Shown here: one piece after another, positions 983-49,513 of the stretch | Position numbering within the stretch: the stretch's first letter is position 1 | Layout: each line of letters begins with the position of its first letter | Source: Octopus bimaculoides | Taxonomy: Eukaryota | Reading direction: 5' to 3' | Assembly (NCBI RefSeq): GCF_001194135.2 | Contig: NC_068985.1 | Span: 126,922,638-126,986,637 of the forward strand | DNA: 64,000 nucleotides | The notes under the pieces: generated by a model | What the model was told of the DNA's origin: nothing | The model's database searches: none | Seen by the model: the letters and a program-made list of their open reading frames with translations, nothing else | Made by a program: the position numbers and the translations under genes

Positions 983-34313
<33,331 letters not shown>

Positions 34314-34316
<3 letters not shown>

Positions 34317-34355
34317 CTCGGCAGATTTAAACCAATTACTGAGAGTAAATTATGA
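34314..34355 (+). other. In-frame C-terminal extension behind the IDH1 stop: (X)LGRFKPITESKL* ending in the PTS1 tripeptide SKL
   Basis: TGA CTC GGC AGA TTT AAA CCA ATT ACT GAG AGT AAA TTA TGA read directly from 34314-34355. Confidence 0.7.
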
Positions 34356-34577
34356 CTTTTAAGCACTATAGCTTATAAGCATGCAAAGGTCTTTTTTTTT
34401 TTATTTTCCCATTTTAACTTTCTAGCATCTTCTATTCATTCTGTACGGTTTTAATGAAAATAAGGGCTCATCAAATCAATCAGTGCTAGCCTGTATTAAA
34501 AAAAATTTTAATCTGAAATTCTTATAAATAATCCTGCCAGTAATCTATAAATACTAACATTTTGTGAATATTTTCGA

Positions 34578-34583
34578 AATAAA
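34578..34583 (+). promoter_or_regulatory. Candidate polyadenylation signal of IDH1 (AATAAA)
   Basis: AATAAA about 260 nt after the stop, followed by T-rich sequence. The hexamer is common in AT-rich DNA, so support is weak. Confidence 0.35.
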
Positions 34584-34804
34584 GAATTTTGGTATCTTTT
34601 GGGAATTTGTGTTTGTTTTGTTAGCATGCTAGACAAAATCCTTTGTAACATTTTGTCTGTCTTTGCATTCTGGGCTCAAATTCTGCCAAGGTTGACTTTG
34701 CCTTTCATCCTTTTGGGGTGAAACACTGGGGTCGATGTCACTGACTAGTCCCCTACCCCCAAATTTCAGGCCTTGTGCCTTCAGTAGAAAGGATTATTAT
34801 TAAT

Positions 34805-36082
34805 GGCGGTGATCTAACTGACTCTTTGAATTTGGAGGTGACAGAAATGAAATTTTGCAAGATTTTGTGCAAGTGGACTATGATAACAGAGAATATAAAC
34901 TTATACTGGATTGCAGAACTAGGTGGAATTGCACATTCCATATGATTGAGAGATTTTTGAAATTGAAAAGCTGCATTCCAAATGCTCTACGAGCAGTACT
35001 TTCCACAGATGCCGTAGTGTGATGAAGAATGGAAATTTCTCGATTTACTATATGAAATTCTGCAACCAGTACAAATTATTTTGAAGGCTATTTGCGCTGA
35101 TGATATGGATTTACTGAAATCGGAATATTCTATAGAATTTTTATTGAATAAACTTAATATCGTCGGCAACCCTTTGGCTCCAAATCTTCGTGAAAGACTT
35201 ATGCATAGATATAATAAGAGAAGAAATGTTGAAACCTTGACTCTCTTGAAGTATTTACATAACCCAATGAAGTTTAAAGGTGAATCAATTTCTGGACCTT
35301 TTCTTTTTTTAACGAAACAACATTTAAGGAAGTATGCTGAACAAACATATAGGAGATTATTTCCTAAACATGACGCTGAGAACACAACAGAATTATACAA
35401 AGGAAATGAAATAGGAGGGAACCTAAAATAAGTGTTACTGTTGTCCCATTACTTATGAAGGTAATGAACTCATGCGTGAATACACAAGCGCAATCAAGAA
35501 AATGAAGGAAGAGCCCAAGATAGTAACAGATGGATTTGAAATCTCTAAAGAATTCGAATATTTTGAAGCAACTTCGAACAGAAGTGAAAAGCTCGAGAAA
35601 CTTTATAGAGCATTGCTTACAACTAAAGCAACTAGTGTCCAGTTGGAAAGAGCTTTTTCAATTGCTGGACTTTTCAACACAAAATTTAGGACAAGTTTGT
35701 CAGGTAAAACACTGAATGCATTGTGTTTTTTAAAAGATTATTTTCGAAGGAAAGTGAATCATCAAGCAAGTCAAGAAATTTGATTGATTCTCAAAAATAC
35801 GACTTGGAAAAACGTTGCATTCCTGATTAAATAAATATAATACCATTATTTTTTGTTATTGTTTGTACATAGATACAGATACAGGCACCACCAACATATC
35901 TGTGGATATCAGTCAACCTGTTGCTTTCTCTGTGTATGTATATAAACAAAATACAATATACGACAAACTTCTTCGTTACAGGAACACCGCTCTAAATCCG
36001 CGAAAACCAGTTTTTAACCAGTTTTGAGAATTACATATACTTAAACTCGGTTTTGGGAATTATCGGTTTTTTGCAAGCCCTA
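34805..36082 (+). mobile_element. hAT-superfamily transposon relic (3' half of transposase plus right end)
   Basis: LILDCRTRWNCTFHMIERFL, EEWKFLDLLYEILQPV and TKATSVQLERAFSIAGLF...LNALCFLKDYF (hAT C-terminal dimerisation-domain pattern). Right end ...ttgcaagcccta corresponds to a TAGGG-type TIR. Frameshifted and 5'-truncated. Confidence 0.8.
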
Positions 36083-36244
36083 CCTCTGCGCAAATTGTAA
36101 CAGCTTGTGTTTCCATCAATTGTTTTTGTGAAAGAGGTTGTGTGTGTGGCCAGTTTATGTACAGAGCTGTTCTGTTGTGCCTTTGCAAGTATTCTGTTGG
36201 TGCCAGTCTGCTGCAGTTCTATATTTGAGAGATGAGGAATTATG

Positions 36245-39112
36245 TACATTATTTATATTAGACAGATATTTGTCCTCATCTTGTCTGTTGTTTACGCAAT
36301 GTTTTGGCTGATATGCTCTCCAGCCTTCTTCAGGTGTCCTGGGGAAATTTTGAACCTGGGTTCTCATTCTTAAGGTATTATTATTATTAATATTATTCAG
36401 GTCACTGCCTGGAATCGATCTCAGAATCTTGGGGTTAGTAGCCCACACTCTTAACCACTACACCATATGCCTATGGCCAATTATGGAGTGAATTTTAGGG
36501 CTTATAAATCTAATATTTTCCTATTCTTCCTTAATACCAGTTCCCATAAGCTATTCATATCTGCACTCGGTCTGCTTAGGAGGTTGTTGTGTCTTAGCAT
36601 ATGTGCTGCTTCTTTCAGTTTTCGTATTTTCCAGTGTTGTTCCCTGTCTATTATTTTAACTTCATCCCACAGGGGGAGGTGGTTTCCATTTTTCCATACA
36701 TGATCAGCTATACCCGATTTATCAATATCTCCTCGTGTCACAGCTTTGCGATGTTCCTCTACCCTTANNNNNNNNNNNNNNNNNNNNNNNNNNNNNNNNN
36801 NNNNNNNNNNNNNNNNNNNNNNNNNNNNNNNNNNNNNNNNNNNNNNNNNNNNNNNNNNNNNNNNNNNNNNNNNNNNNNNNNNNNNNNNNNNNNNNNNNNN
36901 NNNNNNNNNNNNNNNNNNNNNNNNNNNNNNNNNNNNNNNNNNNNNNNNNNNNNNNNNNNNNNNNNNNNNNNNNNNNNNNNNNNNNNNNNNNNNNNNNNNN
37001 NNNNNNNNNNNNNNNNNNNNNNNNNNNNNNNNNNNNNNNNNNNNNNNNNNNNNNNNNNNNNNNNNATGGTGGGAATTGAAGTTGAGGTATTGTCCAGTGA
37101 AGGTTGGCTTGTGGTATATCGATGTCCTGGATCCATATTTGGTGCATGTTATTAATACGTCCAGGAATGTTAGTTGATTGTCTTTTTCCATTTCCATTGT
37201 GAACTGTATGGATGGCTTTATTGAATCCACATGATCTAACAGCACTTGGACATCTTCCTGGTGGGGCCAGAGTATAAAGGTGCCATCAACATATCGCAGC
37301 CATAGGGTTGATTTTAGTGGTGTTGATCCTAAAGCCAAATTCTCAAAGTATTCCATGTATATATTGGCTATTATCAGTGATAATGACGAACCCATAGCTA
37401 AACCCTCTTCTTGTTGATATATATCAGTGTCCATTCTGAAGTAGGTAGTTTTTACACAGAGGGTCAACATTTCCATCAAGTATACATTGGTATGTGGAAG
37501 CGCATGGCTTAGTGGTTAGGGTGTCAGCATCATGATCGTAAGATTGTGGTTTCGATTCCTGGACCGGGCGATGCGTTGTGTTCTTGAGCAAAACACTTCA
37601 TTTCGCGTTGCTCCAGTGCACTCAGCTGGCAAAAATGAGTAACGCTTCGATGGACTGGTGTCCCGTGCAGCTGGGGAACACATACACCATTGAAACCGAG
37701 CCCATGAGCCTGGCTAGGCTTTAAAAGAGCGCATTTATTTTTATACATTGGTATACTAGTGCATTCTTTTAGATGGGTGTCTGTCACCAGTTTTTCTTGA
37801 ATCAATGGTAGTGCTTCATCAGTTGAGACTTTGGTGAACAGACTTATCACATCTAGACTCATCATCTGGTTGGATTCAATGGGGGTATCTTTGATCTATT
37901 CTGTGAAGTGGGTGGAATTCTTTATGTATGATGTTGACTTTCCTGCTAATGGACTGATTATATCCACAAAGAAGCGGCTCAGTGGATGGCATGCTGAACC
38001 TCTACAGCTCACTATAGGTCTTTATGGAATACCATCCTTGTGAATCTTAGGAAGACTGTACATGTGTCAGCTGTCTGTACTTCATTGGTATAAAGTGATC
38101 CTTGTTTGTGATCAAGATCTGTGACAACTTCCTCTATGTTTTCAGAGTTGGGTCTTTATTTTCTTTGCTGTAGCTATCAGCATTTATAAGACTTGCCAAA
38201 TTTTCAGAATAGTCAGACTTGTTCATCACCACTGTAGCATTTCCCTTGTCCGCTGGAAGTATTATGATGGAATTGCCACTCTGTAGTGTTTTGATAGCGA
38301 ACTTTTCTTCTTTAGTGATGTTTGGTTTGGGAAGTTTCGCTTTTCCTAGTAACTGTCTCATTTTCCACCTTAGTTCATCTTCCTGTGCTTTTGGTATCTT
38401 TATGGCTATCTCTTCAATAGGGGCTATTATCTCCAAGTATGGAATGCGCTTGATGGTTGTCGCAAAGTTGAGAATTTTGTTTAGTACTGCTTCTTCAGAG
38501 CTTTCTAGATGTTGGCTACTTGCTTTAATTACTGCTTTCACGGGTGGGTGACAGACTTCATTCTTCATTCTCTGACCTTTGAGCTTCGTAAGCTTCTTAA
38601 GCCTGTATGTCTTCACTTTTTTCAAATTCTTTCTCGTACAACTTTTCTAGATCTTGTTGGATTCTCTTTCTATCATCATCTCTGGTTATTCTCCTAAGTA
38701 ATGAAGATAACCTCTTGCTGATTTCGTTATTTAATTGATGCTTTTTCCAATGGTTGTAATGGATCCTCTCACGGACAAGGGCATGTCCTGCCCATTCTGC
38801 TGCTCTTCGAGCTTCATATGAATCCACTGGTGTCATTACATTCATGCCAGGTGGTATTAGCTTTTAGTCTCTACATCTACACAGGAAAGTTAGATGGTTT
38901 GAAAGATGAGCTAGTTTCTGATGGACCTGAAGAATAATAATAATGATGATGAAGATGATGAGGATGATAACATCGAAAAATACCTTAGGAATGAGAACCC
39001 AGGTTAGAAATTTCCCCAGGACACCTGAAGAAGGCTGGAGAGTATATCAGCCAAAATGTGTTAACAACAAACAAGATGAGGACAAATGTCCATCAAATGT
39101 AAGTCATGTGCA
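36245..39112 (-). mobile_element. Penelope-like retroelement (RT + GIY-YIG endonuclease), degenerate, with inverted terminal repeats
   Basis: Minus-strand fragments IIILPADKGNATVVM, LDVISLFTKV, GLAMGSSLS..IANIYME, WLRYVDGTF, FLDVLI..YHKPT and RVEEHRK..SGIADHVW..RKLKEAAHM. About 135-bp inverted copies at ~36245-36385 and ~38977-39112. Interrupted by an N gap and a SINE. Confidence 0.88.
37494..37741 (+). mobile_element. tRNA-derived SINE inserted into the Penelope-like RT, with 13-bp TSD
   Basis: A box TGGCTTAGTGG (37505-37515), B-box-like GGTTTCGATTCC (37548-37559), and direct repeat TATACATTGGTAT at 37481-37493 and 37742-37754. Degenerate heads of the same family lie on the minus strand at ~4225-4335, ~5225-5300, ~26945-27055 and ~57770-57845. 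Confidence 0.88.
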
Positions 39113-48340: not shown

Positions 48341-49513
48341 ATGTCACCTCACGGAATCAAAGGAACAGGCAAGAAAAATAAGTGCACATCACTTAGTGTT
48401 AATGGACCAAAAATGCTTGCAAAGAAAAAAAGGAAGATTTTAAGTGAGACTCCTGATGTTGATGTGTCTGGAAAAGCAACCAGTTGGCGTGGTCTTAAAT
48501 TTGAATCCTCAAATGATCTTAAAGAGAAGATACTGAAGCAGTTAACATGCCCATCTCGCCAATACAAAGGGAGAGATGGCGAAATAGAGCTTCCTCCCAA
48601 GAAAAAGCGGAAATTTCAAAACAATGGCAGTGTTGAAACTGATTCAGATGTAGAGCAAACTAGTCGTCGAAGCAAACTGATGAAAAAACAGTATCTGGAA
48701 AAGCCTAGCTCTAAAATACATAGATGGAAGAAGCTGGCTGAAGATGCTGAATTGTATGGGTCTTCAAATTCTGCAAGCAAAGGCAAAAAGAAAAAGAAAT
48801 TAATGACTGTAAATTATGAAGATGGGGTTTGTGTTTATGATTTGCACACACCCAGCAAATTGAAGAAAATGAAACGGCAAAAAGGTGCTAATCACATAGT
48901 CAACAAAAAGAAGGTTCATATTGGTAAACGTGTCATTACTCCTCACAAGGGAGGCCGAAAGGAAGCCATGAAACCAAAACTCGATGTCAGCAGCAGTCGT
49001 TTAAAACTTTTGTCTAAAAAACAACGAAAGAAGCTTGAGGAAAATTATTCACTGCAGATCTACAGTGATGTGGAATTGTCAGACAGTGATGTGTCTGCTG
49101 ATGGACAAAATGTAATTTCAACCAAGAAAGGCAAGCTTTCAATGCCTGACAAGTGGAGTTATCGACAACTGCTGAGCAAGAAAAAGGCCAAGTCTAAGAA
49201 AGAACAGGAATGCAATGTTGGCAAGATAAAAAAGTCAAAGCAGCAACACGAGCAGGTTTTGGAGGATGAAGATTCCTACGACAATATTGATGAAGCTTCA
49301 TCTGATGAAGATATATCAGAAGTTGCTGATGATGATGATGACGATGATGAGGATGAGGCTGATGATGCTGAAGAGGATGATGAGGAGGAGGAGGAAGAGG
49401 ATGATGATGATGATGAGGAGGATGACGACGACGAAGACAGTGAGGCCCAAACGAGTGATGAAAGACTTGGTGCAGAAAAGAAAAATGTATCAAATCAGCA
49501 TTTACCCAAGTAA
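48341..49513 (+). CDS. 390-codon Lys-rich (NLS-like) ORF with Asp/Glu tract; unidentified, probably nuclear/nucleolar protein; either a complete CDS or a large first coding exon
   Basis: 1173-nt open frame in AT-rich DNA; KKKRK-type clusters (PPKKKRK, KGKKKKK) and a long D/E run. In-frame TAG at 48323 precedes the ATG. Strong acceptor ttattaacag| at 48170. The ORF ends at CCCAA|GTAAGT, which is both a stop (TAA) and a consensus splice donor (49510). Confidence 0.75.
   Translation: MSPHGIKGTGKKNKCTSLSVNGPKMLAKKKRKILSETPDVDVSGKATSWRGLKFESSNDLKEKILKQLTCPSRQYKGRDGEIELPPKKKRKFQNNGSVETDSDVEQTSRRSKLMKKQYLEKPSSKIHRWKKLAEDAELYGSSNSASKGKKKKKLMTVNYEDGVCVYDLHTPSKLKKMKRQKGANHIVNKKKVHIGKRVITPHKGGRKEAMKPKLDVSSSRLKLLSKKQRKKLEENYSLQIYSDVELSDSDVSADGQNVISTKKGKLSMPDKWSYRQLLSKKKAKSKKEQECNVGKIKKSKQQHEQVLEDEDSYDNIDEASSDEDISEVADDDDDDDEDEADDAEEDDEEEEEEDDDDDEEDDDDEDSEAQTSDERLGAEKKNVSNQHLPK

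Follow-up and report, generated by a model that had tools for sequence, protein, structure and literature searches.

A Candidate Peroxisomal Targeting Signal behind a UGA CU Stop of Octopus IDH1, with Counterparts from Sponges to Echinoderms

Peroxisomes need reduced nicotinamide adenine dinucleotide phosphate (NADPH) in redox defence and to break down unsaturated fatty acids. NADPH does not cross the membrane freely, and it is supplied by an isocitrate/2-oxoglutarate shuttle with isocitrate dehydrogenase (IDH) on both sides. The window analyzed here, a 64-kb stretch of Octopus bimaculoides DNA (coordinates on the + strand unless marked), contains IDH1, the gene of the cytosolic NADP-dependent enzyme, and raises the question of how this enzyme might reach the peroxisome: the normal product carries no peroxisomal targeting signal, but behind its UGA stop codon the same frame runs on to Ser-Lys-Leu (SKL), the canonical peroxisomal targeting signal type 1 (PTS1), and a second stop. 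The tripeptide could be an accident of the 3′ untranslated region (UTR), the end of an alternatively spliced or edited transcript, or the C terminus of an isoform made by translational read-through. The last of these had been called probable in an earlier note made from the window's letters, and comparison of the stop, its context and the PTS1 among orthologues supports it: UGA CU read-through in octopus IDH1 probably yields a minor peroxisomal isoform of 423 amino acids.

Results

An SKL Tripeptide Is Hidden behind the IDH1 Stop Codon

The gene is IDH1. Its 410-residue product is 100% identical to the NCBI protein isocitrate dehydrogenase [NADP] cytoplasmic [Octopus bimaculoides] (P0001). Its bit score is 763 for human cytosolic IDH1 structures and ∼648 for mitochondrial IDH2, and it carries the Iso_dh family match PF00180. 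The N terminus, MTKIKGG, aligns with human MSKKISGG and is without a presequence.

Reading and translation of 34314–34355 revealed the succession of stop, extension, SKL and stop that the earlier note had described. The normal product ends in ASI, which is no PTS1, whereas the frame behind the stop reads CTC GGC AGA TTT AAA CCA ATT ACT GAG AGT AAA TTA TGA. The SKL fits both the [SAC][KRH][LM] consensus and PROSITE PS00342, and the extended product would comprise 423 amino acids (410 + 1 recoded + 12), so that both lengths given earlier, 410 and 423, were right. The elements concerned are as follows.

34314–34316, + strand: TGA (UGA) stop of IDH1, putatively leaky (sequence, translation)
34317–34319, + strand: CTC right behind the stop, predicted read-through context with the UGA CU core motif
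34317–34352, + strand: 12-codon extension, LGRFKPITESKL (sequence, translation)
34344–34352, + strand: AGT AAA TTA = Ser-Lys-Leu, canonical PTS1
34353–34355, + strand: second in-frame stop, TGA, which leaves SKL as the C terminus

In the proposed mechanism the bulk of ribosomes would terminate at the UGA at 34314–34316 and release the 410-residue cytosolic enzyme. UGA CU being a weak-termination context, at a small fraction of ribosomes a near-cognate tRNA (in other systems one for Trp, Arg or Cys) would read the UGA; these ribosomes would go on for 12 more codons and terminate at the UGA at 34353, giving a 423-residue isoform ending ...FKPITESKL. PEX5 would bind the SKL terminus and the minor isoform would be imported into the peroxisome, where it would use isocitrate to regenerate NADPH, in the manner of yeast Idp3 and mammalian IDH1. 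Read-through in the octopus, its rate, the amino acid inserted and the peroxisomal import are all steps that we infer. In Ustilago and in HeLa cells, a UGA with CU behind it is enough to bring about read-through (Stiebler 2014, PMC4207609); the same study found that an added A in the next place raises it, noted that a subsequent G likely helps, and recorded a reduction with UAA or UAG in place of UGA. In the octopus UGA and CU are present and the third base is C rather than the stimulatory A; as UGA CUC is the core motif without enhancers, a low rate of read-through is to be expected.

To set a chance level, all six frames of the window were split at stop codons, giving 7,813 stop-to-stop segments. 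SKL stands directly before the next stop in 7/7813 of these (9e-4), and any [SAC][KRH][LM] tripeptide in 27/7813 (3.5e-3). Estimates of 3e-4 and 3e-3 made beforehand under a uniform-codon model were thus of the right order of magnitude, the value for SKL being about threefold low for the AT-rich sequence of the window. Since IDH1 is a pre-specified gene with orthologues known to be partly peroxisomal, an accidental SKL is already unlikely, although a single case proves little.

The Stop, Its Context and the Terminal PTS1 Are Conserved across Animals

The DNA of 12 further taxa was read past the IDH1 stop, making 13 taxa with O. bimaculoides. Stop and context, followed by the extension, are given for each.

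O. vulgaris: TGA CTC, LGRFKPITESKL
Magallana gigas (oyster): TGA CTAG, LAGRDPSKL
Pecten maximus (scallop): TGA CTAG, LDMEDEPASRL
Lingula anatina (brachiopod): TGA CTG, LAAGEAQGLSKL, core PTS1
Stegodyphus dumicola (spider): TGA CTA, LHMQNSRL
Apostichopus japonicus (sea cucumber): TGA CTAG, LVVDARL
Amphimedon queenslandica (sponge): TGA CTA, LNESRKSHL
Biomphalaria glabrata (snail): TGA CTA, LNNSNISDLCKPKL, ending CKPKL
Haliotis rufescens (abalone): TGA CTA, LKPTIETTRSSL, ending TRSSL
Liolophura sinensis (chiton): TGA CTG, LRKRSSQL
Argonauta hians (L002): TGA GTC, VRL
Logan transcript L003: TGA CTT, LNES

The stop is TGA in 13/13 taxa and is followed by CT in 12/13. With the two Octopus species counted once, a core PTS1 ends the extension in 7/12 lineages (Octopus, oyster, scallop, Lingula, spider, sea cucumber and sponge), and the recognised weaker variants PKL, SSL and SQL do so in three more (snail, abalone and chiton, respectively); PKL is accepted as a PTS1 in zebrafish Idh1. 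The extensions are 3 to 14 residues long and mostly unalignable between phyla, so that what is conserved across the taxa is the stop, its context, the open frame and the terminal tripeptide. Dissimilar extensions that keep a PTS1 at their end are a signature of selection on the terminal tripeptide, and the pattern of conservation is that expected of a functional read-through PTS1.

Binomial tests on the 12 lineages used a background pooled from the orthologue loci, in which a core PTS1 has a frequency of 0.29% and TGA CT makes up 2.2% of stops. The probability of at least 7/12 lineages with a core PTS1 is 1.4e-15, and that of at least 11/12 with TGA CT is 6e-18. The +1 and +2 frames behind the same 13 stops yielded a core PTS1 in 0/26 cases. 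Metagenome contigs scanned with the octopus C terminus yielded 80 IDH loci, nearly all bacterial. The 78 prokaryote-like loci among them (58–68% identity), which served as a negative control, use TGA 34 times, TAA 29 times and TAG 15 times, with no core PTS1 in any extension and a single TGA CT. The only positives among the 80 were the two most eukaryote-like loci, both with TGA CTA and with ARL or SKL.

These two metagenome loci have features of their own. L014 (Ga0314711_10000864), downstream of the match at 601–846, is an intron-free, animal-like IDH1 of 56% GC content and 79% identity; it ends ...NLKLKLNQ, followed by TGA CTAG CG, and its extension, LARL, is at four residues the second shortest hidden-PTS1 extension seen. 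L015 (Ga0247645_1011362), downstream of the match at 581–820, is a eukaryote-like IDH1 of 40% GC content with an intron upstream. It carries an in-frame AKL, then TGA CTA and a 16-residue extension ...IIPSKL, that is, a second PTS1, and may represent a transitional or redundant state.

In-frame C termini were compared among the best 120 IDH1 protein matches. None of the ∼70 non-vertebrate IDH1 proteins among these matches (mollusc, spider, horseshoe-crab, brachiopod, echinoderm and sponge) has an in-frame PTS1, whereas hemichordate IDH1 ends in SKL and most vertebrate proteins end in AKL, SKL or PKL. With the in-frame signal absent from these ∼70 proteins, a hidden signal would fill a real gap. 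As a separate observation, passerine IDH1 (P0087 from Geospiza fortis and P0092 from Dryoscopus gambensis) ends in PKA rather than PKL, outside the PTS1 consensus.

The comparison reverses the polarity of one earlier suggestion, namely that the octopus lineage had moved the signal behind the stop. A hidden PTS1 is general in non-vertebrate animals; the arrangement looks ancient in animals rather than a cephalopod innovation, and the in-frame vertebrate and hemichordate signal looks derived. A hidden PTS1 behind UGA CU(A) is, on balance, the state we favor for the ancestral animal IDH1, with the in-frame fusion of vertebrates and hemichordates and several lineage losses coming later. On this history selection would have maintained the hidden PTS1 in sponges, echinoderms, molluscs, brachiopods, chelicerates and insects, and Argonauta, a second cephalopod-like lineage and Caenorhabditis elegans would have lost it. 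If true, the IDH1 signal would rank with the most ancient programmed read-through events for which conservation is known in animals.

Octopus, Argonauta and the Case for Chance or Relic

The examination of orthologous 3′ ends that the earlier note had proposed gave a divided answer: a terminal PTS1 recurs from sponge to sea cucumber, but an indel and early stop were found in Argonauta and a stop right behind LNES in the cephalopod-like L003, which on the criterion set by that note would speak against read-through. This bears on the strongest competing explanation, that the octopus SKL is non-functional 3′ UTR sequence, either a coincidence or an ancestral remnant that has not yet decayed. We consider this improbable, and it draws on some of the following observations, all of which weigh against read-through.

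In Argonauta hians, whose IDH1 protein is 94% identical to that of Octopus, the stop region at 20826–20846 of L002 has TGA GTC AGG TTG TAA; G replaces C behind the stop, an in-frame TAA follows after three codons, and there is a 2-nt indel relative to Octopus. The counterpart of AGT AAA TTA TGA is AGA AAA TGA TG, out of frame in an alignment made by eye, and VRL lies outside even the loose PROSITE pattern. L003 (run SRR8281685) keeps TGA CT but stops after LNES. Its label as cephalopod-like rests only on identity values, 86.6–87% to octopods and ≤81.4% to other molluscs. With neither extension ending in a PTS1, constraint may be relaxed in cephalopods. The octopus context itself, CUC, is weaker than the CUA(G) found in most other taxa, the Glu found at position −4 is less than ideal in a PTS1 context, and no stimulatory downstream RNA structure was found in a fold of 34232–34420 (z = +0.39). 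The two Octopus species offer little help: their extensions differ at 2/36 positions (5.6%), the last intron is 5.7% divergent and the first 300 nt of the UTR 5–6%. Since the extension changes at the same rate as intron and UTR, conservation within the genus has little power, gives no rate-based test of constraint and cannot part coding constraint from general UTR conservation. Finally, ribosome profiling in Drosophila (Dunn 2013) did not list Idh among the PTS1-bearing extensions.

Pure chance, however, has a probability of at most 3.5e-3 in a gene that was an a priori candidate. In a relic, every part (TGA, CT, the 12 open codons, SKL and the stop) would have had to survive from the time when the losing lineages split off, and the Argonauta 3′ UTR, which is here alignable at only about 60% by eye and contains the indel, is a measure of how fast unconstrained sequence decays. 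Both substitutions between the extensions of O. bimaculoides and O. vulgaris (AAA>AAG and ATT>ATA) are synonymous and leave the peptide unchanged, where only 21% of possible changes would be synonymous (p ∼0.05). Because the arrangement is far older than the cephalopods, its intact state in Octopus implies continued selection. Argonauta, a pelagic octopod, seems to have lost the hidden PTS1, Argonauta and L003 are most simply read as secondary losses, and, as judged from the orthologues, deep conservation elsewhere outweighs the patchiness within the cephalopods.

Exon Structure of IDH1

Twelve coding exons of IDH1 were mapped by tblastn with human IDH1 and inspection of splice borders, every one of which is AG/GT. 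Exons 2 to 11 were placed by tblastn, splice borders and the joined translation. The first exon was found by pattern match and sequence and fits the N terminus MTKIKGGAVVEM of P0001.

983–998, + strand: first coding exon, ATG ACA AAA ATC AAA G/gt, encoding MTKIK-
1516–1555, 14351–14457 and 15926–16012, + strand: coding exons 2–4
18045–18205, 19403–19546 and 21898–21965, + strand: coding exons 5–7
25127–25195, 26271–26422, 26549–26689 and 30187–30349, + strand: coding exons 8–11
34232–34316, + strand: last coding exon (sequence, translation), ending LMASI and then TGA
34232–34313, + strand: sense part of the last exon, (G) + 27 residues, the conserved C-terminal helix
34578–34583, + strand: AATAAA (sequence), likely poly(A) signal

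A 14-residue motif within the C-terminal helix is kept in 120/120 homologues. If the AATAAA acts as the poly(A) signal, the 3′ UTR is likely ∼0.3 kb long; the alignment of O. bimaculoides with O. vulgaris is ∼95% identical up to ∼34655 and breaks down beyond that point. A protein search with the C-terminal 88 amino acids as query found no cephalopod sequence beyond an old 104-residue O. bimaculoides model with the same C terminus, the remaining matches being short fragments from unrelated animals.

Splicing, Editing and Selenocysteine as Other Routes to the Same C Terminus

Two other routes that the earlier note had named, alternative splicing and RNA editing, found no support. In the first, the donor at 30349 would be joined to a cryptic acceptor, CAG/A at 34324/34325, so that the peroxisomal isoform would arise by splicing. 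The acceptor exists as claimed: inspection of the splice borders places its AG at 34323–34324, in frame with the donor phase, and it is present in O. vulgaris too. Cryptic PTS1 motifs reached through alternative splicing are also known in fungi, for example in GAPDH (Freitag 2012). Its use, however, would remove the last 27 residues, and the helix that they form is conserved from sponge to human (120/120 homologues), as had been anticipated. The tract upstream of the acceptor is part of the coding sequence, lacks a T-run and has a pyrimidine content of only 55%. Moreover, splicing predicts neither the universal TGA, nor the CT context, nor a PTS1 in the frame of the stop elsewhere, whereas read-through predicts all three, and we regard the splicing route as very improbable.

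An equally slim prospect is adenosine-to-inosine editing, by which ADAR would turn the UGA into UGG (Trp) at 34316 and open the same 423-residue SKL isoform. Cephalopods recode their transcripts heavily, which speaks for this route, but the 5′ G neighbor is disfavored by ADAR, and, judged by the fold of 34232–34420, local RNA structure near the stop is not out of the ordinary. A search of 31500–36500 (±2.5 kb) found no inverted repeat over 34314–34316, the nearest arm (20 nt, 75% complementary) ending 10 nt upstream of the stop, though the stop may still pair imperfectly or over a long range. Sponge, echinoderm, bivalves and spider, in which massive recoding by editing is not known, also have TGA, CT and a PTS1 in this arrangement, and its presence in all of these makes read-through rather than editing the common explanation. 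Editing could nevertheless add to read-through in the octopus.

The conserved UGA might also be a selenocysteine codon helped by a selenocysteine insertion sequence (SECIS) in the 3′ UTR, a reading that the retention of UGA in particular in 13/13 taxa would fit but whose likelihood is negligible: a permissive Rfam search of 34200–35400 gave five chance-level matches (E 1.2–6.7) and no SECIS, no Rfam match reaches the gathering score in the whole window, the conserved CU(A) behind the stop is a read-through motif and no requirement for selenocysteine, and IDH1 is not known to be a selenoprotein.

Discussion

Relation to Known Dual-targeted Enzymes

Read-through at UGA CU, the explanation favored above for octopus IDH1, has been predicted before for IDH. 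The Drosophila case that the earlier note mentioned is correct as a prediction: IDH read-through PTS1 motifs were predicted, without IDH experiments, for Drosophila melanogaster Idh (TGA CTA, N10-SHL), Apis (SKY), Tribolium (ARL) and the mollusc Aplysia californica (TGA CTA, N16-SKL) (Stiebler 2014, PLoS Genet, Fig. S3 and Table S2, PMC4207609), and a 2016 review repeated the fly case only. These cases share with the octopus the enzyme, UGA with CU, a short in-frame extension ending in a PTS1, and the status of a prediction from sequence; the octopus differs by CUC in place of CUA and by the unrelated sequence of its 12-residue extension. A literature search found no further invertebrate reports beyond the three insects and Aplysia, and no experimental demonstration of an animal IDH read-through isoform in the literature searched. 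The kind of IDH read-through PTS1 seen here is therefore already known as a prediction, to which octopus IDH1 adds one more member. What appears new is the breadth, which takes in sponge, echinoderm, brachiopod, chelicerate, bivalves, abalone and chiton, together with the loss in some cephalopods.

The read-through extensions of LDHB and MDH1 measure 7 and 19 residues, respectively. The human peroxisomal read-through isoforms of both enzymes are proven (Stiebler 2014, PMC4207609); MDH1x and LDHBx arise at UGA CUA(G) and end in CRL or SRL (Stiebler 2014; Schueren 2014). Like octopus IDH1 as proposed here, they derive from cytosolic redox-shuttle dehydrogenases with a leaky UGA CU and a minor peroxisomal pool. 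Unlike it, they are NADH-shuttle enzymes and were demonstrated by reporters and microscopy, where the octopus case is a prediction from sequence.

Fungi provide further parallels. Among the glycolytic enzymes, Ustilago PGK is extended by read-through at UGA CU and GAPDH by alternative splicing (Freitag 2012), and in both, as in octopus IDH1, a cytosolic metabolic enzyme has a PTS1 concealed beyond its usual end. The fungal IDH, Idp1 of U. maydis, differs from the octopus enzyme in having its PTS1 in frame. Pre-duplication yeast IDP2 (PMC4526572) belongs to the enzyme family of octopus IDH1 and is likewise mostly cytosolic, with a minor peroxisomal form and a cryptic PTS1 in the 3′ UTR, but there slippage into the +1 frame is required to expose the PTS1, whereas the octopus PTS1 is in frame 0 behind the UGA and neither the +1 nor the +2 frame contains one. 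Vertebrate and hemichordate IDH1, orthologs of ∼80% identity, owe a dual cytosolic and peroxisomal location to their PTS1; in contrast to the octopus, AKL, SKL or PKL stands in the normal frame, on every molecule and without recoding, and mammalian IDH1 likewise has its own PTS1 in frame.

Implications

The octopus gene and its orthologues across animal phyla suggest a general route by which invertebrate IDH1 might reach peroxisomes, in which a small and possibly tunable fraction of the enzyme would be extended by stop-codon read-through. Genome annotation would gain a concrete missing isoform, 423 amino acids long in the octopus, and IDH1, with its deeply conserved arrangement, would offer a natural system for testing read-through at UGA CU. 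Octopus versus Argonauta provides a lineage contrast that could serve to relate the loss of the signal to peroxisomal metabolism.

Other Features of the Window

Several further elements lie in the window. A (TATC)n microsatellite at 1003–1020 starts right behind the splice donor of IDH1 coding exon 1. The intron between the exons at 26549–26689 and 30187–30349 contains a 169-residue open reading frame (28576–29085, + strand) of mariner type, with a Pfam Transposase_1 match (E = 3e-26), which is probably a transposon remnant. Some 2 kb downstream of IDH1, a reverse-transcriptase-like frame (36502–37479, − strand) with an RVT_1 match just under the Pfam cutoff (E = 1.7e-6) is broken by an assembly gap (a run of Ns) and looks like a retroelement copy. 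An uninterrupted 390-residue open reading frame at 48341–49513 (+ strand), without a Pfam match, has a Lys-rich body and a long Asp/Glu tail, and may represent either a large exon or a complete single-exon gene for a nuclear/nucleolar-type protein.

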